A DNA stretch of 64,000 nt. It comes from Gnetum montanum. Lineage: Eukaryota; Plantae; Gnetophyta. The DNA lies in the NCBI GenBank assembly GCA_015680685.1, contig MNCI01000690.1, forward strand, positions 701,888-765,887, given 5' to 3'. The notes under the pieces were generated by a model. It was not told where the DNA came from. It did no database searches and saw nothing but the letters and a program-made list of their open reading frames with translations. Of the stretch, positions 1,138-41,500 are shown piece by piece (position 1 is the stretch's first letter; each line of letters begins with the position of its first letter). A program made the translations under genes and the position numbers.

Positions 1138-2326
1138 GAATGTCATAGGAAAGAGCTTAAGTTTTTACCATCCATTATCAATGTTGTTCCATGCACAGGC
1201 ATTGTGGAAGGCTTGCAAATGTTGTTATGGATCTAAATCGTAGGCTCCTGAAAACTTAGGAAAGTTGTTTAAGTCAAGCATGGGTAGATGGCTTTCCTTG
1301 CGATGTCTCTTGTATTTCCGTTAGGCTTGTAGTGGCCAGTAGGGATTCATTGTCATTGGGTAGATTATGCATTCGTGAGTTGGGATGATGTAGTCTTCAT
1401 TTATGTTTATAGGAAATCCCTACATCAGATTGGGTACTCCAAACTTCATCTTGATCATCGTATAATTCATTAGTTCTCCAATGAATTGCCTTACTAGTTA
1501 TTGTGTTATCATAGTCTTGTGAGAGAGACATGGTTGTAAATTTGTGTGTGACTTAACTGAAATTAATTTCTTTTCTAAAAGATGTACCGCAAATACTTTG
1601 TTACATTGATCTTGTATGATGTAACTAATCTAAATAACTAGCATCATCCCTGGTAATGGTGCCAATGATGAGTGGAGAGGTAACTCAACCATACGAATAC
1701 GAGTGTTTCATGAACAATCTGGTTGAACTCTGCAGATGGGCTAGTCGTGGTATCTAGATAGTTACTCGTTGATCACAGTTCACTGTCTTCCCACTTGGAC
1801 TAGTATATGCTTTGTCACGTATGGTTTAGTCCAGAGTGAGGTGTATGATGTGTTCCTAACTAATGCTACTCCTGGAGGCGATGGAAAATAATCTTAGCTA
1901 AGCTAGGAGGAAAAGGGGGAGAGAGTTATACTAAGAGGAGATAGGGAGAGAGAATCTAAACTAGCCTAAGTGCGATGAGCATCCATTCCTTAATCATCTA
2001 TACACATCTTGGACCTCATGCATGACTACTACTAGGANCACACTGTGGGCATGCATTGAGAAATAATTCTAACTCTAAGAAGGAAAAATTACAAGAGTTT
2101 GGGTAAGGGACTAAGAACTAATGTGGAAACCAAGGGTGCCGTCTCTTATTTATAGGCAAGGAGATAGGCCACGATATCATGTCAGGTCGTGATATTGGGT
2201 ATCTGATATCGAGGGTTCGATATTAGGACTCATCAGATAACAGGGGCCTGATATCGGGGGTCCGATAACGGGACTCATCATATAATAGGGGTCCGATAAT
2301 AGGACCTGAGAGACCATGACTCAATA

Positions 2327-2886
2327 CTATGGTACAAGCATGAAACACAATTCATATTTATTAACCAATATGACAAAAATCCTAGGAAACCTATCTTAAG
2401 ATCAACTAGAATATCCTATCCTATTTCCATTTTCCACCTTATTTTAGTTAGTTTCAAAATCTTGGAAATATCATTGCCTGTTCGAGTTGTCTCTAGCTTT
2501 TTCGAGATGTCTCGCTATAAAACTATTCATTAGGATGAGACATCTCACTTTTGGCTAAGACATCTTACATTGTAGCTAAGATGTCTCAACACTTCTTTAA
2601 AGATCTCAGTTGAGAGGTCTTCATACTTATGAAATGTCTCATGTGATATCTAAGATGTCTCATGCATTCTTGAGATGTCAAGTTTGAGACATCTATCAAA
2701 TTTCCCAGACATCTTGTGCAAGCTCTTAACTTGACCCAATCATCTCATGTCTCTTCTAAGATCCTAGATCTTGGAAAAGATGGCTCTAAGACCTCTAAGA
2801 TGTCTCCAAAAAGCCCACAACCTACAAAAACACATATTTAGGAAAAGAACAAGGGAATTGGAATAGGTGTCCCTACACCATTATCA
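2327..2886 (-). mobile_element. LTR fragment of the CRM-like family, interrupted by family A copy 1
   Basis: The reverse complement of 2327-2450 aligns with 12985-13100. It carries AGATGTCT/AGACATCT arrays as at 31915-32075 and starts TGATAATGG at 2886 on the minus strand. Confidence 0.65.
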
Positions 2887-4601
2887 TTGATTTTCAATTT
2901 TACCTAAGGTTTAGAGCTTACTTGAGATGTTTTAGTCACGCGAAGGCTTTCATCTATAGCATTGTCAATTGGATAGTGGAAATTTGGTACATTACTCTTG
3001 TTTTTGGGTTTTTGGTGCTTTGGTTATGTGCACATTCACTGTGGTCAATTTTTTTTGTTCATCAACTATTTCAAAAGTGTCTATATGTCAAATCTGATTA
3101 TTTTATGCATGTTTTTCAGGATATAGCATTTTTATAGTGATTTATTTTATTCATGGAATACTGAAAATTAGTTTGGCTTTGTTTTGATTTGTTTTAATTC
3201 CATTGTGATTTTGCCAATTTTTGGATAGTAGAATGAGGATTTTAAACCATAATTTATAGTTTTGGGCCTCAAGCAATAGTAGAATTAGGGTTTTAAGCCA
3301 TAATTTATAGTTTAGATTTGTAGTTTGAGCCATAATTTGTAGTTTGGATCTTGAAAATTGTGAAAGTGACTAAAAATATATCTTAAAGGGCTTCCCAGAA
3401 TTCTTGAAGGTCTAAAAACAACAATTGATCATCTTTTTAGGATTTATAGGCTTTTGTTGGGACTTTAGATTACCATTTTTGAGTTTTTGGAAATTTTTGT
3501 TATTGACTTAGAACCTTAATTTTCAATTCTAACAATTTCAAATCCCCATTTAGCAACAATTTCTTTTGCTTAGATTCTTTTCTTTGGTTTGCTAAGAAAT
3601 TTGGACACATTTTTGTTGGTGACCATTTGAAACTGCCAACACTAGCCTTCGAGATCTCGTGACTAGATCATGGATAACGAAGGTGTTCTTTCAAATAGGG
3701 TTTAGGTGGTTGTTGGTCTCTGGCAACACCAAGTCCTAAATACATTTAAATAAACTTAGTGGTTATAGAGCGAACTAAGCGTGAATGTGTAGTTACTGTT
3801 ATGATTGTTGAAATGGTTGGGTTTGCATATGAAACTATAACTGGCTATTGTAACAGAAATTCAACTAACTTCGTCAAACACTGTGAGTTATTAAAGATTC
3901 CTATTTTGTTAAGTCAATCTATATAGTCCCTATTGTACATTGCTTGAAACAAATAAAATTTCACAAAAATGCTTAAGCACAATTTTGCCAAAATCTACTC
4001 CTAATTGCCCTTAGAAAGAAAGTTTCACAAGAAAACTAGAAATAGAGTAAGATTCAATGGATTTAGAAAATGAAAAAAAAAGAAAGGCCGATTTGTGTGA
4101 AATCTCAAATATTTAAATAAGATAACTTGACATGAGGAAACACTTCGCAATAAAGCTATTTTAGTTCAATTTAAATATTATGAATTGTCCAAACCCTCTA
4201 AGCTCAACAAGCAATTTCATAAAAGATACTCTTATTTAACTACCAAAATGCTTTGTAAATGACAAAGTACAAGCTTTTATTTGGCTAGTTAATAGTTGTC
4301 AAGAATTGCAAACAATAGAGCTTTCAAATTTTTTTGACAATTTCAAGATTGAAATATTAAGGCAATAAACTTTTTTAAAAAATAAAGCTATTTCAATAAT
4401 CTCAAAGTATCAAAGATTTTTTTAGATCCTCTAGACTCAAATAGGCAATTTTTATAAGACATTACTATTAAATTGCTCAAGATGCTTTTCTAAGATAATA
4501 TAAGCTTTTATATGGCAAACCTAATAGAAGTCTAGTATTGCACAAAAACAGAGTGATAAGAGCAATGAGAAAATCCCAAAATTAAATGCCAAGCACGATA
4601 C

Positions 4602-7505
4602 TGTTGGCGACCGTTTGGGACACGACCGCCAACAAGTGTCCTCAAACAGGATTTAGGTGCTGTTGCGGCGTGTGGTTGTGAGAAATGTAACGATTGCGTT
4701 GCGTGTAAACTACAAATGACTTACTTTAAAGAGATTCAGCCAACTTTGCCAAGTACTGTGAGTTCTTGAAAATTTCCTATTTTGTTCAACTGCCTAGTCT
4801 ATGCGGTCCTTATAATACCTACTTGTAACAAATAAAATTTTGCAAAAACATTTGAGCACAACTCCGCAATCTACTCCTAATTTTCCCCAGAGAAAGAGAT
4901 AGTTCCACAAGAAAACTAGAAATAGAGCAAGATTCGATGGAAATAAGCAGAAAAGAAAAGAAAGCAGATTTGTGTAGACCTCAAATATTTAAACAAGGTA
5001 AAATGACACGAGTAAACACTTCGCAATAAAGCTATCCCAAATTCAATATCTACGAATTGTTCAAACTTCCAAGGCTCAAACAAGCAATATCTTCAAGACA
5101 ATCCTACTATGCTACCAAAAATTGCTGCGTAAACTACCACGTACGAGACTCCATTTTGACTAGATAATAGATGTCAACGATTGCATTCAAACAGAACCTT
5201 TAAAAGACTTGACAATTTCTGATTGAAATACCACGGGAATTCACTTTAAAGATAAAAAGAAGCTATTCTGGTCCCATCAAAATACCAAAGATTTTCTGAA
5301 CCCTCTCGACTACTGAATTGTTCAACGGCGTGACTACAAACAGAGGCTCTCTTACAACAATCCCAATAGCAGTTCCCATACGTTGCACAATAACAAAATT
5401 TACTACTAAAATGCTCTCAAGGCTTTTAAACACAAGCGCTTCTATGGCAAAATTTTAATAGAAATTTCTATCGGGCAACAAGAACAATAAGAGCAATCTA
5501 AAAATCCCAAAATTACTTGCCAAGGATGATACTATCTAAACCACTAGCTAAGCAATTTAAACAAAACAAAAAATGAAATGCATAACTCACAGGACCATGA
5601 CAAAGAGGCTGAAATCTTTATTCTAGCAAGCCATCTTGCAAGCAATCTTCTTTACAAATCTTCTTTGATGTGAGAAGTGATGATCCAATGTTCTTCCCTT
5701 CAATCCCCCTTTTTTTTTTACTTGACCCTTGAAGCCTTTTTATAGGGTTCAAAGGTAGGTAGGGAAGTTACATTTTAAAAATATCTCAAAAATATCTCAC
5801 CTAACTTTTCTCCCAAGTAATTGGACTATCCAATTAGAAAATTACTTGCCCAACAAGCTAGGAGATTTCTTGTCCAACAAGTTAGGTAAGTTACAACAAT
5901 TTTGGATGGTTGCAACCACCAAAGAGATAAAAAAGGCTATAATTTAGTTATATAAATAAAAGGGATAATAGCCAAATGTCTCCTTTCATATGAATATCTC
6001 ATAATTGTTCTGTTCTTTCCCTTTTAAATCATAAAAATATTTTATTTCATGTAGTGATAGGGTAGTAACCATGGATTTGATGCATGGGCTAATGTGTAAA
6101 TATAGGTATATATTCGAATGCATAAGTGGAGATGTGATCCATATGTTGATTTGTAGCATCCCTAATGTGATCTAATTTAATTTAATTGGGACATTACTTG
6201 TAAGTCTTGCTCAGCAAAATATTTGGTTAAAGATTAGAACTTAATCTAGCCTAATTTAATTTAAATTCCTAAGTGTCACTAAGCTCTAAGATTTTATAAA
6301 AAATCCAATATAATCTTCCCTTTTGATAGTAGCGGTGGTTAATTTTATCTTGCATCCGATAATTAGAATTCGGAATAACCAGAAATACGAGCCCAAAGGC
6401 GAAGCCGGTACTGATTCAAAATATCTTCTTTGATCGAAGACGTTCCAGCAACTGCCTTCAAGGGAGAAGACTCTGCCGCCGTATCAGGAAACGTCGCCGT
6501 GTGTTCGGTTTGGATCAGCAACTGCCTGCAAGTTTTGATGTTACGGTTTGAAAATTTTTGCTCTGCACTTTCGGTTGTCCTTCCGTCGCGGTGGCCTGCG
6601 CTCAGATCGGCGAGCAAAAAGGCAACGATTTCAACGGCAAAGGCCGGATTGGTTTGATGCCCGCGGAAGATGCAACGATATCGGCAGTAACAATGGTGGT
6701 CGTGAATGGTTCTCAGCGCTAAGGGTTTCGGGTCTCTATCCAGTGCCTGTTTTAAATTTCTGTCAGTTGGAGCCATAAAAATGTTGAATAATCGGATATA
6801 CTGCAAGGTCGTTTCAGGTTTTCAATCAGGGATAGGGCTTTCAGCTTGCGATAGCTCTTGATTCAACAACATCTCCATGATTGCTCGCACTTTTTTTTTG
6901 ATGCTGAGCTGGATGACTGATAATTTTTGGGGCAGACTGCTCATTTTCTTTTCTGCAAGATGCCGTTTTAGTTGCCCTTTTCGCTTGTGCACGCAAGTTT
7001 TTCACCGTCTCTGTTTTCTTCATGTGCGCTTGCCTTCGGATCTGATCCCTTGTGTTGAATTTTTCGCGTTATTCATTCTTGAAAACTGCATGTAGTTCGT
7101 TCCTGCTCTGGCGGTGGCCATTAATCACATTTTTTCTTTTTTTGCCTCCTCCATGTGCAGGGCTTTATCGCTAATACGATGGCCAGTCCAATCCTTTGAT
7201 AACCTGACCTTTTGATAATTTGATTTTTGAATAATCCGATAATGTATTATCCATGGTTTTCAATATTAATAGGGAGTATATCCTTTAGTAGTAAATAATC
7301 CCATCCTTAGATTTTTTTTTAAAAATTCCAATCTTTATAACTTGACATTCAAACACTTCAACATCAAGATTATTTATCATTGGCTTGCTCCCTATCAACT
7401 CACAATATTAAACTGCAATTTTGTAACCAGGGATTGTGCTATCTTTGAACAAAATANTAAACAAAATATTCCAACTGTTCCATGTAATGGCCAAATGTGC
7501 CAACA
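4602..7505 (-). mobile_element. 2904-bp solo LTR (inner copy) nested in a relative
   Basis: Termini TGTTGGC...GCCAACA form a 7-bp inverted repeat. Perfect 5-bp TSD GATAC at 4597-4601 and 7506-7510. No gag/pol, PBS or flanking PPT seen. Confidence 0.9.
5726..5755 (-). promoter_or_regulatory. Putative LTR TATA box inside an imperfect inverted repeat (inner copy)
   Basis: Minus strand reads CCTTTGAACCC-TATAAAAA-GGCTTCAAGGG. A homologous motif lies at 7663-7694. Confidence 0.55.
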
Positions 7506-7662
7506 GATACTATCTAAACCATTAGCTAAGCGACTAAAGACAAAATGAGAAGAAAAGAACTCACAGGATTAAAACAAAATAGCTGAATTGATGCCTTTAG
7601 CAAGCTATGCTTTATAATCAGTCTTCAATCTTTCCTTCTCTCCCCAAAATCCTTCATTTATA

Positions 7663-7694
7663 CCTTTGAAGCCCTTTCTATAGTGACTTCAGGG
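7663..7694 (-). promoter_or_regulatory. Putative LTR TATA region (outer copy)
   Basis: Minus strand reads CCCTGAAGTC-ACTATAGAAAG-GGCTTCAAAGG followed by TATAAA. It is the positional homologue of 5726-5755. Confidence 0.5.
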
Positions 7695-7889
7695 TAGTTA
7701 CAATCATAATGAGAACTTAAGGGGTGTTACAAATATCTAGGATACTAACTCATAACTATCATAAGAAATTACAATTTCTATGAGAAGTTACACCTTCTAT
7801 AGAAATCAAAGCTATAGTTACCAAGTGCCAAATTGGATAACCAACTTTCTTCTTAAATCATAACCCTCTTTTTTTAAAAAAATAAAAAA

Positions 7890-8090
7890 ATTCAATGGCA
7901 TTAACAAGACCAATATACATGTGTAAAAGCAAAAGCTTAAAACAAATAAATGGATCCGTAGTATAATCAACGGGCTTTTACTTCTGAACTTGTCCTCCTT
8001 CTGACTGTGATTCTGCTCTCACCAGCACCATCACTGCCGGGAATCGGGGTCCAATCCACGGGTTTAGGAAAGATAGCTGTAACTTTAGTT
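7890..8090 (-). other. Unidentified coding-like C-terminus plus 3' UTR-like tail
   Basis: Open reading KVTAIFPKPVDWTPIPGSDGAGESRITVRRRTSSEVKAR* followed by a T-rich tail. No family recognised. Confidence 0.3.
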
Positions 8091-8424
8091 AACAATACTT
8101 AAGGTGGGCCTCTTTGACTTTCCCACCTTCTTTATAACCACCAATGAGAGGCAAAAAGAGAGGCAGCTGCGTGAATGAAGATGCAAAGTACATGGACATG
8201 GCATGATCATATACAACCTTCTAAATCAGAAATGATCTCGGGGCGGTTATTTAACACTCTGCCGCTGGAAACATTCATATATCCCATTAATGAAGCCCTG
8301 CGGCCAGTGTTCTGTTTAGCGACCAAGTTGATACAAGATGAGCAGTAACAGCGGCAGCCACAGCAACAATGGCGGTTTATGACAGAGAATTGACTACCAC
8401 AGAGGCCAAGCCAAGTCCACTGAC

Positions 8425-8965
8425 TCTAACATCACATTCGATACCCCAGAACTGCAAATGATTCTAAATTTCAAAACCAATACGTTGGAGACGGTACAAG
8501 ACAGCTATTTCATGCAGTGGTATGCCTTGATCATTCACGAATTTAATGAATTTCACAATGGCAGTTGCCACACATAGCTCATTTCTGCAATCACATACAC
8601 TCATAACTGAGCCATGGGTTGATGATGTTCGTACAGTCTCTGGCACTCGGTTCCTCTTCTTGGAAATCAAGCTGGAATGCCAATGCTGCGAAAATTCTGC
8701 TGCAATTTCAGTGTCACTGCTGTGGGAAAAATTTTCCAAACATTTGAATATTGTGAAAACCGCTTGCGCCTCACCGGGAATATATTTGTTTGTCACCATC
8801 ACCTACAATTGTAATGCAATCATGGCCCTGCGGATATTATTCTTAGTAAATCATATTGGTCCATGTCTGTATCCTTTACAGTATGTCTGATAAAACCATT
8901 AAAGTTTATTCTGTTAGCCTCAAGAGTCCGTTGCTGACAGGTTTTGAATATCCAATCTGAAAATC
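8425..8965 (-). pseudogene. UvrD/Rep/PcrA (SF1A) helicase fragment, frameshifted, with internal deletions
   Basis: Across frames: QQRTLEANRINFNGFI, DTDMDQYDLLRII (after Walker B), CITIVGDGDKQIYSR*GA (motif III, VGD.DQ.IY..RGA), SLISKKRNRVPETVRT, GIPLHEIAVLYRLQRIGFEI*NHLQFWGI (motif IVa region). Confidence 0.85.
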
Positions 8966-9029
8966 CATGTCCAAATTGCTGGTTTTGGAGCCAAGAAGAA
9001 TCTTCAGGGAGGAGGATGTCAGTCTTGCC

Positions 9030-9125
9030 ATTAAGGTAGTTGGAAAGGCAGCCGATGCCGCTCATTTCGTAACCACTGAATGGTGCGTAGGTTTTAATAA
9101 TTATGAAACAGTTGATAGCCACGTT
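9030..9125 (-). pseudogene. Aldehyde dehydrogenase (ALDH2-like) C-terminal fragment
   Basis: INCFIIIKTYAPFSGYEMSGIG--CLSNYLNGK resembles the ALDH signature WINCF.....PFGGYKMSG.GRE....L.NYL..K with a short deletion. Confidence 0.75.
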
Positions 9126-9136
9126 TACGTCCTGGG

Positions 9137-9409
9137 TCATCCATATCCAGACTCAATTCTCTTTCTTTCAGCTAACATCATTCTGGGCATAGCATGCATT
9201 TCGTTAAAGTCATGTCCCGTGATGGGTAAAGTCGCTGGAGTGGGAGCCGGTGATGGTAATGGCGACCTTGACGCAGTCACTGTGATTGAAGCCATAAACA
9301 AGAAAAATGCCACAACAACTGCTGCAGGCCATCGTAACCTAAGAGAAGCCTCCAGACTGAGCTTATCCATTTCTTCCTTTGCTATGGATGCGAGGCACCG
9401 CTCCTCCAT
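9137..9409 (-). pseudogene. N-terminal fragment of a secreted Pro-rich protein
   Basis: Hydrophobic signal-peptide-like stretch WPAAVVVAFFLFMASITVTA followed by SRSPLPSPAPTPA. Family not recognised. Confidence 0.45.
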
Positions 9410-9529
9410 TATACTTCATTAAGCTTGTACAAGGAGGAAAGTCATCTCAGTCAAATCAGAACGTTGCCATCGAGGTCGGCACTGTAAATAAGTAAATAAC
9501 TAAACGCTGCTGCTGGGTGTCTCCATGGA

Positions 9530-9805
9530 GTTCAGCACATTTTCTTGTTGCAAAAGTCAAGTATGAATAATGTTGAGTAAACCCTGCAACTGTCCATCCA
9601 TCATCATCAGTTATGGCGTATCCCAACGATCTCGTCCAAGCCTCCCAAGGATAGAAAGACACACACATGTTGTGACTGTCTCTGTATATTAGTGCAGCAT
9701 AGTCCTTGCCGGTGAGATTGTTATAGCAACTGATCATGCTACCGGCGTCATGACTAAAGTAAATGCGGTCTATGTATATTTCCCAGATACCCGCAACCTC
9801 TGAAA
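9530..9805 (-). pseudogene. Serine carboxypeptidase-like (peptidase S10, SCPL20-like) C-terminal fragment, apparently intronless
   Basis: SEVAGIWEIYIDRIYFSHDAGSMISCYNNLTGKDYAALIYRDSHNMCVSF..EAWTRSLGY..VAGFTQHYSYLTFATRK parallels HDAGSMI..H.NLT..GYRALIYSGDHDMCVPF...EAWTRSLGY...QVAGYTQGY...LTF.TIK. Confidence 0.9.
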
Positions 9806-10939
9806 ACTACTTTTTGGTAAGCAGAGTTTTGCCAAGTCTTCTTCCATTACGGCAATAACATTGGCTTGGTTGATATAGAGGCAGCTGTATCCTCTAACAC
9901 GGCACACAGTCACGCACCATGCTTCAAAGTTTAAGCCAAGATCATGTTATCTGACTACATGCTGTGTTAATATTAAAATTTTTCTAGGATTGCATGATGC
10001 ATTATCTAAGTGTCTTGAACATGAAAGACATTATCCTCTTGCCTTTTAATGCTTTACCTTTTCTTATACTCCGTCAATCATTCTATTTAACACTGAATAA
10101 CTTCTAGAAAGCCCGTTTAAGCCCATTAAAGTGCCAGAAACCTTTGATCTCTTTTTCAAAAAATCATTTCTTTTTCGAATCAACTTAGACCAGGCAATAA
10201 ACGGAATCCCCTTTCAAAGCCTGCTCCATTAAACGGGTGAAATGTGCCAACCTTTTCTCATCACCCAGGAATTGTTTGGATACATACATACATGGTATTC
10301 ATTTTCATTTGGTTACATTTGTATTTCTTAGTGGGTATTCTAACATTTTGAGGTGCTTATGTAGGTTGCATTTCTTGGTAAGTATAATTTGTTTAGTTTT
10401 GGTTTTGTTTGGGTTAGGGGGTGATGATGGAATATTTCTATTAATTTTATTAATAGTTGAATTATTTAATTTAATTTAGTTACTTTTGTGATTTTGATAT
10501 CTTTAAAATTTTAAAGCTAACTTTTTGGATGTAGGTACCCCTATGCATGACTATCTAACTTTCCAATTCCTGATTTCAAAACTCATAAGGGAGTATTTAT
10601 AGTTTGTTTTCCCTACTCAATCTTAGGACTAATTTTCCTTTTATTTTTATGCCTTCTAGAAGATTCATTTAGTTATGAGAAAGATGAGATATATGTAGAA
10701 GTTGATGCTTACAATAATACTTTTTATGCATTATTGGAGTTGGATATAAGTGGCTACTGGTTATGTGTTTCTCCTAAGCTATGATGTTTAGCTGGTATTT
10801 GGTACTATGCAATGTTTGTTTTAATTTGTTGTGAGGATTTATACTTGCCTGTCTTTGGTGCAAACTTAAACTTTATTATAAATATTTATTATTGTAGTAT
10901 TGGATATTTTATTTAGTTTTTATTTAAATGATTATACTA

Positions 10940-24789: not shown

Positions 24790-26325
24790 AGAGGTCATGC
24801 CAAGCAGGGAGTGGCAGAGCCTAGAATGGCAAGTCACAGGAGCTAGGTGAAGTGGGACAAGAAGATAACTGGCCATCCCTTCTAGTTGATAATAGGCCTA
24901 ACCATGGTGGCAATGTTGGATTTCCACTAAGGGATAGATGCTGAAGGAAGAAAATCTCAAGGAACACTCTTAGAGCATGATCCAGATACTCTATTCCAAA
25001 TCAATAAAGCATTTTTTTCTTTTTTTTCATGCATTTTTCCTATTATTTCCTTTATGCATAATTCTAAATGTTACATACATTTAATGTTTGGTATATTTTC
25101 TTCTTACACACAATGTCTAATATAATGTATATTTGACATTTTTCCATGACATATGGGAATGGGATGTCACAATTGGTATCAGAGAAAACCATGACCCAAG
25201 GGCCATTCAGAACCATGGGTTGACTACAACATGAATTTGATGAGGAACCATGAAGCCACGACCTAGGGAAAATCATTGATCATCACCAGATGCACCATAT
25301 GTTTGAGATATTCCACCAACCAACAAAATTCTTTCATGGATATCATTGACTGATGAAGATCTGATTACGCCTCGTCAAGATTCATCAATTACAAGAGATG
25401 TTGGTAAGACAAGGACACACCAATCTAGGTAACTCTTATCCATCTTAATACAATAAATATTAATTAATCAAGGTCATTATTTATTTTCTTCCAAAATGTT
25501 AGTAACTATGACCTAAATTGATTATTTTTTTGTTGAGACTCATTATCCAAATAATCTAGAACACCTTAAGTTACCATATATCAACCTACAAATTTTAGTT
25601 CAACAAAATAGGCTATTTTGGTCCTTTTAATTTATGAAAATCCAACTTCATTTTTGAACTCTAAGACTATCTCTAATGCATAGTATGTGTCAAGACAATT
25701 CCAATGGTATAAATTTTGTCTTAATTGGACATACAACTTGAAAGATATTGATGTTTAATGTTTCTCATTTTGCATGCATTAAAGAATATTAGATTATTAT
25801 TTTATTATTTTAAAAAAAATGAACGAGAGGTCATGGGTTCAAATCTAGGAACTCCTACCTAGTAAAAAAAATAATAACAATAAAATTAAAATATATATAA
25901 TTAAAAAAAAGAAAATTTTTCATGGGCCACATTGGCTTGCAAGAGATGTGCAAGCCCGACAGGCCACGTTGTTCTTACAAAGGCCACGTAGGCCCTACAG
26001 GCCTCACCAACCTTGCAAGGGCCATGTAGGCCCTATTAAGGCAACACAACCCTTAAGGGAGGGCTATTGCCCTCTAAACAAGGTGACCGTGCATAGGTTG
26101 CCGTAGCACATCACACACTGCCACATAGTTCATGCAGTTTCTTACTAGGTTTGCCATTGTTGGAAATTCTTGCATCACATCATGGCTACTTGTTTTGCTA
26201 GAAACCCTTGCTTTGTGGCTACTACTACCACCGCGCTACCTTAATTGCTGCAACACACTACCTTGGTCATGCCCCATGCTGCTGTTGTTGTTTAATCATG
26301 CTACCCTCCATTGAAGGATGCTGTC

Positions 26326-26700
26326 CATAATGGCCTGTTTTGGCACTTTGTGGGCATCAATAGTGCCATACATAATGGCCTGTTCTAGTGCCCTATGAAC
26401 ATCAATAGTGCTATCCATACTGATCCATTTTGGCACTTTGTGGGCACCAGTAGTGCCATTCATAACAACCTATTCTAGCACTCCATGGGAACCAATAGTG
26501 CTATCCATAATGGCCCATTTTGATGCCCCACAAACATTGACAATGCCATTCATAATGGTCCATTCTGGTTCTTTGCGAGCACTAACGGTGTCATCTATAA
26601 TGGCTCATTTCGGCGCTTCGCAGACACCAATGGTACCATTCATAATGACATGTTTTGGTAGCTTGTAAGCATCGATGGTGTTGCTCATAATAGCTTGTTT
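26326..26700. repeat. Diverged 45-bp tandem array, about 8 copies
   Basis: CATAATGGCC(T/C)..TT..G...CAATAGTGCCAT recurs every 45 bp, with alternating variants. Confidence 0.85.
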
Positions 26701-27387
26701 TGACATCAAAACCCCAAAAATCACATGCAGCATTACCTTTTGCATGGGCCATGCCAGCTCTTGTGAGGGTTGCATGGACCCTTGCATAGGCCACATAGGT
26801 GTTGCTTAGGTTGTGCCGACCCAAAGTTGGGCATGCAAGCCCCGTTTGGGACCATGTAGATCTAGTTTAGGGTCATGTAGGCCCCCTTTGAGGGTTGTGT
26901 AGGCTCATGTGAGGGCTGTGCTAGCCTTGTGCAAGCCTCATTGGCCATGCGTGGGCCACGCTAACCTTGTGTAGGCTGCACCATCCTTTTTCCCCTTGCA
27001 CATAAGTCAAATCAACCTCCATGCGCTATAGAAAAATGTCATGAAAAGGATGCCTTCATCACCATTGTTGCTCAACAGTCCTTTCCTATAACTACTACCT
27101 CCAAGACATGTTGTTGTCCTCTACCTTGGCCGTTGATGTGCTCATGACGTTGCCCGCTCTACCTTAGATCCCACTACCAATGCACCATTGCAGGGATTAT
27201 TGCCACCATCTTTGCCTTCCATGTGACATGAAAGTTCTTTGTCAATAGACAGAAGATTCAAATTTTCCATCAATTAATAGAAAATTCAAAATTCTTGTTG
27301 TCATGTTAGTTTAAATTGAGAATGCCTAGAAATAATTTTTTAAAAGAACTTGACACCTTGGTTGAAACTAGGATACAAATTTCGTAA

Positions 27388-28067: not shown

Positions 28068-28966
28068 ATGCAGACTCAAAATATTGTTTCAACAAGGTGT
28101 ATGATACCCAGGAAGAGAAATGATCTAGAAAAAAAATTCAAGAATGAGAATGAAAGTTGCAACATACAATGTGCTTGCAAGATCCTTAGTGAGTGAGGAA
28201 CAACATCCATTATGTTCATCATGGGCCTTGGATTGACATGAATATTGATACCCATGCATCTTAGCAGAGTTACAAGATTTGGATGTTGATGTTTTATGCC
28301 TACAAGAAATTTTGCCATGGGAATTCCTATATCAATTCCAATGATATTTGGGAAAGATGGGATATAGAGGTATTTACAAGCAAANNNNNNNNNNNNNNNN
28401 NNNNNNNNNNNNNNNNNNNNNNNNNNNNNNNNNNNNNNNNNNNNNNNNNNNNNNNNNNNNNNNNNNNNNNNNNNNNNNNNNNNNNNNNNNNNNNNNNNNN
28501 NNNNNNNNNNNNNNNNNNNNNNNNNNNNNNNNNNNNNNNNNNNNNNNNNNNNNNNNNNNNNNNNNNNNNNNNNNNNNNNNNNNNNNNNNNNNNNNNNNNN
28601 NNNNNNNNNNNNNNNNNNNNNNNNNNNNNNNNNNNNNNNNNNNNNNNNNNNNNNNNNNNNNNNNNNNNNNNNNNNNNNNNNNNNNNNNNNNNNNNNNNNN
28701 NNNNNNNNNNNNNTCAAGAACCATAGTTTACCAATTACTCTACTATGATTAATGAGGATGGGTCAAAAACATTCTTCATTGAGACTATGGATTATATTTG
28801 GTATGATGTCTGATTCTTCCAAGTTACCAAGTTACTAGAGTTGATTTCTAAGGAAGAAGTGGAGAAGAATCAAGATCAAGGTTTGCCATTAGAAACAAGA
28901 CCATCCAATCATATACCACTTATGGCAGAATTACAATTACTTCCATCAATTCATAAGGTTGATTAA
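28068..28966 (+). pseudogene. CCR4/nocturnin/Angel-type EEP nuclease ORF, copy 1 (spans an N gap)
   Basis: MKVATYNVLARSL..HPLCSSWALD*..Y*..ILAELQDLDVDVLCLQE..LGKMGYRGIYK, then after the gap EP*FTNY..FIETMDYIWY..QVTKLLE..GLP..PSNHIPLMAEL. These match CCR4-family motifs YNVLA, LCLQE, DYIWY and PSDH. Confidence 0.9.
28385..28713. other. Assembly gap (329 N)
   Basis: Run of N. Confidence 1.
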
Positions 28967-37645: not shown

Positions 37646-38589
37646 TTCATAGATCTTTAATTCACTTTTTATAATTATCTTAGACAATGAGGTAAGTAAT
37701 GATAAAAATATTTAACTAATTTAATTTTTACATATTCTTCTCACTTATATTTTATTTGTAGAATAAGAAAGAGAATGTTATGATATATAACTTCAAGTCA
37801 AAAGGAGATATCATAGTATTAGAGCATAGGAGCATGGAAGGAGCATTGGAGCTAGAAAAAGATTATGAAAATGGACTAATTTGAGAATGAAAGAAACCTA
37901 AGGGGGATAGATTATCACATTCCCATTCCTGAATGGTGCTGTTGCATAAGGAAGATTGTATTTCTTCATAACAAGTGTCAAAATTATTGTAATAAGATCT
38001 AAAAGATCATATTGTAGTTAAGACATGAAAGGATATGTTCTAATAACAAGCATATCTCTTGAGGTGACCTTTGGGGATATGACCTAAGGTATTTATACTT
38101 GGGCATTAAAGGTCATATCAGCATGGAGTTGTGGAGCTAGTAAACACAAGTAACAAGTGCTAGGTGAACTAGAATAGGAAGAGGATTGGCCATCCCTTCT
38201 AGCTGGTGATAGGCCTAATCATGATGATAGTGCTGGATTACCTCTAGGGAATAGATGTTGAAGGAAGATAACCCTAAGAAACACTCAGAGCATAATCTAG
38301 ATACACTATTTTACATCAATAAAGAATTCTTTTCTTTTTCATTATATATTTTCCTTATTACTTTCTTTGCACATAATGTAAAATGTTACATATATTCGAC
38401 ATTTGCAATGACATAGGGGAATGAGATGTCATACCTAATGATAAAAAAACCTTTAAAAAATTATATATATATATATATATATGGATTAGGGTAAAATAAT
38501 ATTACAATTACCCATAAATCTAGAAATTTTCTATATTTTATTAAAATAAAATCTTATTATATAATAAAAGTACAAAAGTATTATCTTCT

Positions 38590-41500
38590 ACTTTAGAAAA
38601 AACCAACATGAGTTGTCAAGAATACTCAAGTTCAAGAAATATAAGGGAGAATATAATACACATGATACAAATTAAACCCGTGTTACCATGATGACAAATA
38701 GAAAGAATATTTATAATTTTATGGATCTTATGATTATGAGAAATATAATAATAATAAACTCATATGCATTGTAATCCNCTAGGTGAACTAGAATAGGAAG
38801 AGGATTGGCCATCCCTTCTAGCTGGTGATAGGCCTAATCATGATGATAGTGCTGGATTACCTCTAGGGAATAGATGTTGAAGGAAGATAACCCTAAGAAA
38901 CACTCAGAGCATAATCTAGATACACTATTTTACATCAATAAAGAATTCTTTTCTTTTTCATTATATATTTTCCTTATTACTTTCTTTGCACATAATGTAA
39001 AATGTTACATATATTCGACATTTGCAATGACATAGGGGAATGAGATGTCATACCTAATGATAAAAAAACCTTTAAAAAATNCCTCTTGGGAATAATTGCA
39101 ATTCTTGTGTTACAATCCCTCTTGTGAAAAAGTGAAAAACCATATATGAAATGCATTAAAAATGGCTATTAGTCACAACCTTGACAACCCAAGATCATGC
39201 CATATAGTTATGACCTTCTTAGATAAGGAACAAATCATGATAGCCTAATGAAATAGAAATCAAATAAATATTTTTATTATTTTTAATGTTTAAGTCATCA
39301 ATGATAGAATAAGGAAAAATCATGAGCTTTATTTACCATGCAAACATTGGAATTCACATTAACTGAATGATTCTAAACTTTATAAGTAAGATAGTATTCT
39401 AACAGAGTCTAGCCACACTTGTTAAATTAATGACTTAAAACACGCATTAGATAAAGAAGAAAATCAACTTACCCAAGGGAGGAAGAGCTTTTCATATAAA
39501 ACTAGATGTGAAAAGCCAAATAGAAATGCTATGAATGAATTGTTAAGTGTTAGAGCTTATCCTAGGTATTTACAATTTTTATAACATAACAACAGATGTT
39601 TTCTAGTGCTCAAGTAAAGATTGAGAACTTAGAAGGAGGGTTGAATAAGTTACACCAATTTGAATATAAAATTGCACATAAATGTACATGGTTCTGTAAC
39701 TTGGGTATGTCCATGCTTGGTGGGTAGAATCCTTGCAAACCTCTAGACTTTTTTTCTTCAAAAATGTGGTTTCAGAGACATCTTAACCTTTACAAAGTTT
39801 GAGCTCCACTAGGAGTGTTTTTTCTCAAGAAACACACTTAATCCTACAAGATCCCGACAAGCTCAAAATGTGGTTTCAAGGATCTCACAACCTTTGCAAT
39901 GACTTAAGCTTCACATAGAGTGTTTTCTCAAGAAAAATACTCAACCTTGTAAGGTCCTAACAAGCTCAAGGGATTCCTTCTCACAAGAAGCATATCAAAC
40001 ACATAGGACTTACAAATGGAGAATAAAAAATTGAGGTAATGTAACTACTGATTCCTTGCTATGAGGCTTTTGACAATTATAATATAACTCACAAAGATAG
40101 ATAATTAAAGAACAAATCAATTTACAAGATGTATAAAATGAAGGAATATTCGTGTTAATAGTGCTTCTTTTTTTCATAAAGATATTCTTTCTTTTATAGC
40201 CTCTATCTTTATCAAATGACCATTGGTGTTCATATAATAACTAGAAAATGGCTAGTTGGAATGTCTCATTCAAGCATGGGATGTTTTCCTAAGTTTTTAT
40301 TACTTGTAGGTAGGATGTCTCACTTTTTTTGGGACGTCTGCTATTTTTTTGGAATGTCTTTCTTGAAATTGAGCTTTTGCCACTAGGACATCTACTATTC
40401 TTTTGGGATGTCTTGGAAAAAACTAGAACATCTTCTTTTAAATTGTATATATCTTCAATTCTTACATTGTTTGTTGAAACTTTGATAATCAAATTGACAA
40501 CTCAGCTCTCATCTTGGTTTGAACATATCTTAGTATTCACCATGATTCTATCTTGCTCTCATCATACTCTTGTCAAGATCTTGCTTGTATCTTATCTTGT
40601 TCTTGTTTTGATTACATTATCCTATTATCTTTTTCAAGTCCTACAAAATTCCACATGTCCATTTCCCACATTCTCCATTTTCCAAGATTTTGACATACCA
40701 AAAGATTAACAAAAGCTCCCTTTTGATGATGTCCAAAACTTGAGAAAATGGATTAGCATAACATAACATCATATGAAATAATTATAGCACAAACATTTGT
40801 ATGTATATATAGCTAAGGATGAAAACAAGATGGATAGTGGTTAATAAATACAAATCCTTTAGTATCAATCTCATAGGGCTAATTTAGAGCTACTCATATC
40901 TATTCACAAAGTAAGTCAACATATAATTCATTTAGCACAAAGATACCTAATCAAAGTCTTTCAAATTTTGGTCTAAAATATTTCCATTTAGAACAAAATG
41001 CTGAACATCAAATGCTGAGCACTGATGATCAAGTATTTTGTCTCTAAAAAAACTATGATAAACAAAAAATGTGTGGCCAAGAATATATCATGAATAATAG
41101 GCACTAGTAACCAAAGCACAATCTATTGTATATGCCTAGAAATCTCAAATCTACATTAGTATGAACACTATATTCACAAAGATAATAATCATAACCAAGT
41201 CTCAACAAATATTCTTCATCATGTACAAACTATGACCAATAACTTAAGATAACATCATGAACTTATCATAAAACTTTCTTTCCCTTTTTGGACATCAGCA
41301 AAACGATAACACAAATGGATTCCATTGGAAGGAGAGAGAAATAACACATACATCTCAAAAATACTAGGAGAAAAATCTTGAAATATACTTAAGTCAAAGT
41401 CTCAAAAGGATCCAACATTCATAAGAAAGAATAGCTCCATAACCTATCAAGTCTAATATCTCAACAAGATTCCTTATCATATCAAGTATATATATCTAAA

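Follow-up and report, generated by a model that had tools for sequence, protein, structure and literature searches.

Host-gene pieces in the U3 position of a solo LTR from Gnetum montanum: evidence consistent with capture through RNA

How does a chain of pieces from unrelated host genes come to lie inside the long terminal repeat (LTR) of a retrotransposon? The question is raised by a 64,000-nucleotide (nt) stretch of Gnetum montanum DNA (assembly GCA_015680685.1, contig MNCI01000690.1, positions 701,888 to 765,887 of the forward strand), hereafter the window, in which a minus-strand LTR of about 3.7 kb, LTR-1, carries such a chain, the cassette, in its U3 position. A first-pass annotation, made from the letters alone, had described the cassette as a string of captured, spliced host mRNA fragments. 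The mosaic does lie inside an LTR-type unit, with a family-conserved 5′ tip on one side and a family-conserved promoter/R/U5 half on the other, and one of its pieces, from a serine carboxypeptidase-like (SCPL) gene, is without three introns found at the same residues in other plants. Gene capture by plant LTR retrotransposons is known, usually in the internal region and one gene at a time. For the present locus, RNA-mediated capture of host-gene pieces into U3 is the best reading, to which we give slightly better than an even chance.

LTR-1 runs on the minus strand from 10252 to 7506 and again from 4596 to 3614, and is interrupted by a related solo LTR of 2904 nt, LTR-2, at 7505 to 4602 on the minus strand; with LTR-2 removed, LTR-1 measures 3730 nt. 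The parts are as follows, where depth means summed word depth in run X1 and is not a copy number.

10051..10252, minus strand: 5′ terminal module of LTR-1, starting with GGTTGGCACATTT; about 32 nt of terminal similarity to LTR-2; depth 2,276 over 10051-10250.
7887..10050, minus strand: variable cassette, a host-gene-piece mosaic in the U3 position; 2.2 kb, 42% GC; depth 30-100 over 7851-10050.
7506..7886, minus strand: constant part of LTR-1 comprising promoter and R; TATA-like site near 7663-7694; aligns to LTR-2 at 5634-5528; depth 5,000-57,000 over 7451-7850.
4602..7505, minus strand: LTR-2, a same-family solo LTR nested in LTR-1 and reading TGTTGG...CGCCAACA; its U3 is unrelated, and a GTATC duplication flanks it; depth 1.5-2 million over the U5 half (4651-5650) and 2,000-6,000 over the U3 (6051-7450).
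3614..4596, minus strand: rest of LTR-1, U5 half, ending in CACCAACA at 3614; 73% identical to LTR-2.

The two LTRs open almost identically, LTR-1 with GGTTGGCACATTT at 10252 and LTR-2 with TGTTGGCACATTT at 7505 (12 of 13 bases match); no third site in the window comes within one mismatch of the 13-base LTR tip. The termini read TGTTGGCA...CGCCAACA in LTR-2 and GGTTGGCA...CACCAACA in LTR-1, the first base of the latter being changed (G, not T). Both are ends of the TG..CA type with short terminal inverted repeats (TIRs), TGTTGG/CCAACA, and LTR-2 is flanked by a perfect 5-bp target-site duplication, GTATC (7510-7506 and 4601-4597). When LTR-2 was excised in silico, one alignment block spanned the insertion site (7608..4462 against 5634..5400, 71%), and a second block aligned the U5 half of LTR-1 with LTR-2 5311-4707 (73% over 623 nt). 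What the two LTRs have in common is the first ~32 nt and the promoter/R/U5 half (~1.1 kb), which in both contains a conserved CTATA(A/G)AAAGGCTTCAA motif, while their middles are unrelated. No other relative of either LTR was found elsewhere in the 64-kb window. The flank above 10252 is AT-rich (28% GC) and no retro-element open reading frames (ORFs) were found in it; LTR-1 is best read as a solo LTR. A purine-rich GGGTGATGAGAAAAGG lies at 10253-10268, directly upstream of the first base of LTR-1; it resembles a polypurine tract (PPT), no internal region follows it, and it may be due to chance. A small hairpin closes both LTRs (3614-3645 and 4602-4640), formed by an inverted TGTTGG(C) ~15-20 nt upstream of the final CCAACA. 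The U3 of LTR-2 (about 5830-7460) is unrelated to the LTR-1 cassette and moderately repeated; it includes a GC-richer block at 6360-7100 with a 147-amino-acid (aa) minus-strand ORF, for which neither Pfam nor a word-indexed protein search, which sees only proteins of similar length, gave a relative.

Two kinds of data were mapped on 4451-10450: for organisms A, C, and D, Logan contigs from three DNA runs, and for organism A also raw RNA reads. The depth is 77 in the flank just outside LTR-1 (10251-10450), and the exact contigs of the cassette, which show 0 differences over 238-402 nt, have a depth of 10-17 each. The contrasts, with the cassette 20-fold below the 5′ module and up to ~10,000-fold below the U5 half, are robust, and on this basis the LTR ends are very high-copy, whereas the exact LTR-1 cassette is about single-copy, with a few partial paralogues at 80-90% identity. 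Depth steps at ~10250 and at the nested junctions, together with thousands of U5-half contigs across the three runs, also reveal dispersed copies with the same termini, as the first-pass annotation had expected. Read joints from 4596 to 7506-7511 occur in all three DNA runs and skip exactly 2909-2914 nt, so that LTR-1-type copies without the nested insertion exist elsewhere. Other copies differ internally: there are DNA loose ends at 7463, where family copies diverge ~43 nt inside the LTR, and 17 RNA reads matching the constant part continue past 7886 with a different, uniform sequence, indicating that another expressed copy joins other cargo at the same point. Exact cassette contigs are present in organisms C and D too; the locus is therefore common to these close relatives.

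The first-pass annotation had counted fragments of at least four genes in the cassette: SCPL, a secreted Pro-rich protein, aldehyde dehydrogenase (ALDH), and UvrD. The SCPL and UvrD assignments stood (best E values 1.8e-26 and 2.9e-5), ALDH came out weak (0.065 and 0.11), and the Pro-rich protein found no relative. The pieces are the following.

9959..10042, minus strand: 84-nt exon-like piece of an expressed gene; RNA reads match this span only, with 18 loose ends on each side.
9483..9806, minus strand: C-terminal piece of an SCPL20-type serine carboxypeptidase, degenerate, with no introns at three conserved intron positions.
9137..9409, minus strand: 90-aa ORF, called a secreted Pro-rich protein by the first-pass annotation; an ORF only.
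8988..9125, minus strand: candidate ALDH C-terminus, weak; matched in two libraries, in neither significantly.
8440..8836, minus strand: UvrD-type helicase piece of ~130-150 residues, collinear, with frameshifts and stops.

As had been claimed, all identified pieces are on the minus strand, in sense with the LTR, and fall in the interval bounded by the 10252 terminus and the TATA-like site near 7690. The cassette has 42% GC, compared with 30-31% in the constant LTR parts and 28% in the flank, and is exon-like in this respect. Its right edge is known to ~100 nt only. Stops and frameshifts mark this LTR-1 copy as decaying.

The SCPL piece is the best supported. A phmmer search against 1.84 billion proteins gave 79 matches, 19 of them at E values of 1e-10 or below, and a profile built from these matches returned the piece at 1.2e-27 with an alignment starting at 9803; the nearest named relatives are annotated as 'serine carboxypeptidase-like 20', which makes the piece SCPL20-like where the first-pass annotation had spoken of clade I. 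RNA reads of organism A come from an SCPL gene that is ~85-95% similar (an estimate from per-read mismatches) and collinear with 9801-9604, and they carry an upstream exon (..VREALHAEK) and a WRPWLVDRQ segment as loose ends; at the WRPWLVDRQ position the window piece has a small deletion. Within 9646-9780, the window has T or A where the SCPL RNA has C or G at 8 of the 16 listed differing sites, which fits C-to-T decay of a methylated repeat copy. Three further SCPL candidates were rejected. Weak tblastn matches had suggested an N-terminal piece (8095-7958) and another SCPL-like stretch (10207-10079), neither of which a full-length SCPL profile supported, and an extension above ~9803 into the VRKAIHAE exon was dropped as the C-terminal profile starts at 9803 and the full-length profile reaches 9842 only through low-confidence columns.

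For the UvrD piece, the NCBIfam model TIGR01075 (uvrD) matched at positions 290-350 with an E value of 2.9e-5, followed by PRK11773 (2.5e-4) and pcrA (0.009). The match in the PDB covers residues 294-356 of E. coli UvrD, and the top named matches in a protein atlas are UvrD_C (n=12, at 0.91-0.92). Upstream of the match, VGDxxQxIY and QNFRS motifs could be recognized by eye in other frames at the correct spacing. One paralogous contig matches no more than 8376-8824 here, a UvrD piece of 449 nt. The UvrD ORF had no relative in the word-indexed search, which is confined to proteins of similar length, and two short sub-pieces had no match in the PDB. The candidate ALDH piece was matched in the PDB to residues 467-508 of maize RF2C (E 0.065), with 12 more ALDH chains matching at the same position, and in Pfam to positions 419-444 of 461 of Aldedh (E 0.11); the protein atlas held no usable match for its ORF. 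The 90-aa ORF had no relative in Pfam, NCBIfam, or the word-indexed search, again limited to similar lengths, and the cassette parts outside the listed pieces had no Pfam match. The 84-nt piece is bordered on the minus strand by AG, directly ahead of 10042, and by GT, directly behind 9959; it could be a captured exon with intron stubs or part of a sibling LTR that some host gene uses as an exon.

Do these pieces belong to the LTR at all? They might be decayed host pseudogenes that came by chance to lie between two unrelated repeat fragments, so that no single unit would exist. The imperfect duplication around LTR-1, its first base G rather than T, and the mere ~32 nt that link its 5′ tip to the family would agree with this. 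However, the truncated pieces of unrelated genes abut without intergenic DNA, the tip, promoter, and U5 are ordered and oriented as they should be, on the plan also seen in LTR-2, and depth drops sharply at 10250, so that chance juxtaposition appears very improbable.

If the cassette does lie within one LTR, it may still have entered as DNA once the LTR was in place, at this locus alone, either as filler made of cDNA and genomic scraps in double-strand-break repair or within a gene-fragment carrier, in which case the cargo would be no inherited component of the element. The exact cargo is about single-copy (contig depth 10-17, summed depth 30-100) between two high-copy flanks, and its duplication in a second LTR was not seen. 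The splice-site-like edges (TTTTCAG before ~9801 and AG/GT around 9959-10042) fit genomic pieces, and in mouse, according to the accessible part of one report, break repair captures reverse-transcribed spliced mRNA together with retrotransposon sequence (PMC4516963). The first-pass annotation had itself named a single-copy mosaic bounded by its own TIRs, target-site duplication, or Helitron ends as grounds for giving up its view; the exact cargo is indeed about single-copy, while bounding ends of this kind are absent. No TIRs bound the cassette, the only inverted repeats detected being of 10-19 nt, at chance level, and none of them at the cassette edges; no duplication flanks it; and on either strand of 7780-8000 and 9950-10270 there is no Helitron 3′ end, that is, no CTRR-T with an upstream stem of at least 6 bp. 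Furthermore, the identified pieces are all in the sense of the LTR, the cassette sits exactly where LTR-2 likewise carries unrelated sequence, and in an expressed copy elsewhere the point 7886 is joined to different sequence. Taken together, DNA-level entry is unlikely, though it deserves to be kept in view.

The splicing state of the SCPL piece bears most directly on whether RNA was involved. No inserted bases interrupt its alignment at ALIY|S(GDHD) and (Q)VAG|F, the two points at which the first-pass annotation had read straight through, or, additionally, at T(x)K|G. The intron positions that it had named were checked in two ways: in truncated gene models among the SCPL matches and in plant-like genomic SCPL20-type contigs from a metagenome scan. 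In nine gene models, truncated or mis-predicted, ALI[YF]R gives way to junk, which is the signature of read-through at AG|GT, and three models each diverge after QVAG and after TVK. Among the genomic contigs, four (L051, L056, L061, and L071) have an exon ending in ...ALI(Y/F) followed by ag|gt, with the next exon hundreds of bases on; two of these (L056 and L061) have further introns after VAG and before G(A/S)GH; and L059 and L060 have an 84-nt intron at the ALI(Y/F) site. The named positions were thus borne out, and, as judged from these alignments, the SCPL piece is without three introns that are present at exactly those residues in genomic SCPL20-type genes of other plants. At least one piece of the mosaic is free of introns in this way and most likely passed through RNA.

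Such an RNA need not have been a spliced host mRNA. Genomic DNA or unspliced read-through RNA might have been captured, with the introns spliced later from the transcript of the element itself. Such a history explains both the loss of the complete SCPL introns and the acceptor- and donor-like ends kept by partnerless edges, and it requires the sense orientation that is observed. On the other hand, the 157 nt upstream of the SCPL piece have 42% GC and are exon-like rather than intron-like, yet end in TTTTCAG; there is no evident route for genomic DNA into U3; and the ALDH and SCPL pieces are 3′-terminal coding parts, which is what cDNA synthesis starting on mRNAs would yield. Later splicing without any spliced host template is accordingly a distinctly unlikely account of the cassette.

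RNA-mediated capture into U3 is the reading preferred here because of the shared sense of the pieces, the intron loss, the 3′-terminal coding parts (SCPL and probably ALDH), and the other cargo found at the same junction; transduced sequences in retrotransposons are usually in the sense of the element (PMC7264820). LTR-1 belongs to a very abundant LTR-retrotransposon family with fixed ends, namely a short 5′ tip of ~43 nt and the promoter/R/U5 half, and a variable middle; according to this reading, the U3 middle would act as a free cassette tolerating any sequence. In this ~3.7-kb solo LTR it is a 2.2-kb chain of same-sense host-gene pieces, for which RNA is the most likely way in. During reverse transcription of the 3′ U3, the enzyme could switch onto co-packaged host transcripts, some of which may be incompletely spliced, and then switch back; by an equivalent route, the captured sequence could lose complete introns while travelling in the element's own transcript. 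Switching of this kind may have built the mosaic stepwise, and the cargo might serve as a source of small RNAs or as camouflage.

Several observations weigh against the preferred reading. With regard to introns, at least one further DNA contig crosses ALIY|S without an intron and may represent either a sibling copy or an intron-free parent gene, and the picture would be no different if the host SCPL20 parent had itself lost its 3′ introns beforehand. The SCPL homology opens, preceded by TTTTCAG, no more than ~5 nt from where the exon starts, and AG/GT border the 84-nt piece; both features fit an unspliced or genomic origin for some parts, and because of them an origin from fully spliced mRNA only is not shown. 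The description as spliced mRNA fragments consequently holds for the interior of the SCPL piece, where the three introns are absent, and less surely for the mosaic as a whole with its acceptor- and donor-like edges. No A-run was seen in the sequence at the 3′ ends of the pieces as a remnant of poly(A), the A7 at 7875-7869 being in the constant LTR part. With regard to the element, the window contains no full-length copy that would show a primer-binding site, a PPT, gag-pol, and the same cargo in a second LTR, and LTR-1 is flanked by GAAAA/AAAAT only, which is imperfect, of low complexity, and too A-rich to count as a clear duplication. The exact cargo is about single-copy, so that amplification of this mosaic is not shown. 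Finally, about half of the cassette is without an assigned origin, and 8988-9125 is a weak candidate for an ALDH C-terminus, its matches falling in the right family and at the right position and being non-significant. The locus is a clean nested example with read support that does not by itself prove the mechanism.

Other features of the window lie apart from the two LTRs. A tandem array at 26319-26723 has a 45-nt period and at least 8 units that are 60-77% alike, and is located in the GC-richest kilobase of the window (48% GC). A 300-nt direct repeat of 100% identity (38160-38459 and 38779-39078, spaced 619 nt) is accompanied by single Ns at 38778 and 39081 and may be an assembly join, and a gap of 329 Ns occupies 28385-28713. 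Five direct-repeat pairs (15064/20432, 24784/29594, 40322/44792, 28714/36906, and 45836/52260) of ~300 nt or more, 76-89% identical and 4.4-8.2 kb apart, are likely LTR pairs that belong to other and older elements lying nested within each other.

Beyond this locus, it is possible, although we would not call it probable, that this family, one of the most abundant LTR families of the genome, uses its dispensable U3 middle as an open cassette that reverse transcriptase repeatedly fills with pieces of host transcripts. Many 'Pack-LTRs' would result, their cargo doubled at each transposition and kept in solo LTRs, so that the genome would contain, across its whole extent, an archive of the transcriptome of those cells in which the element replicates and possibly a source of small RNAs directed against host genes. 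If so, the cargo would be duplicated with each jump and left in every solo LTR beside a promoter, which bears on the spread of gene fragments and on cross-silencing between transposons and genes, and such LTRs would seed false gene models in annotation.

Among known systems, the transduction or retroduplication of genes that plant LTR retrotransposons bring about, as in maize Bs1 and in surveys of rice, sorghum, and pepper, is alike in placing host gene sequence in an LTR element with loss of introns relative to the source gene (PMC2774510, PMC3726574, PMC5664825; here and below, as far as the accessible text of these surveys extends). LTR-mediated capture is described there for the internal region (PMC5664825, PMC3726574), the cargo lying within the element or between its LTRs (PMC2774510, PMC3726574, PMC5664825), whereas the cargo of LTR-1 occupies the U3 position of the LTR itself. 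In the accessible text of the maize survey, fragments from two or more genes were not found in any one LTR element under its conditions, while LTR-1 chains several unrelated genes (PMC2774510). Chimeric LTRs are known to arise by aberrant template switching, as in a BARE-2 LTR with Wis-2 sequence and in long Veju TRIMs (miniature terminal-repeat retrotransposons); these are alike in that foreign sequence enters an LTR by switching between co-packaged RNAs and yields new U3 variants, but their donors are other retrotransposons or unknown DNA rather than, as here, a chain of host protein-coding transcripts (PMC13317346). A description of multi-gene cargo inside plant LTRs was not found in the literature searched, whose coverage is incomplete and which is no proof of novelty. 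Cargo in the 3′ U3 is tolerated in engineered 'double-copy' retroviral vectors and in cargo-bearing plant retrotransposon vectors, and would be copied into both LTRs; the double-copy vectors are an engineered design, and duplication of the LTR-1 cargo into two LTRs is not observed in the window. The Pack-MULE, Pack-CACTA, and Helitron carriers share with the present family the mosaics of several gene fragments, the constant element ends, and the cargo that differs between copies, but they capture at the level of DNA, with introns retained, and have TIRs or Helitron ends as their bounds. The present case differs from Pack-MULEs and Helitrons in lacking bounding TIRs and a Helitron end, in TG..CA ends with a 5-bp duplication (that of LTR-2), and in one LTR-1 piece without three introns; if the proposed capture is true, such LTRs would be the retro-element counterpart of Pack-MULEs and Helitrons.

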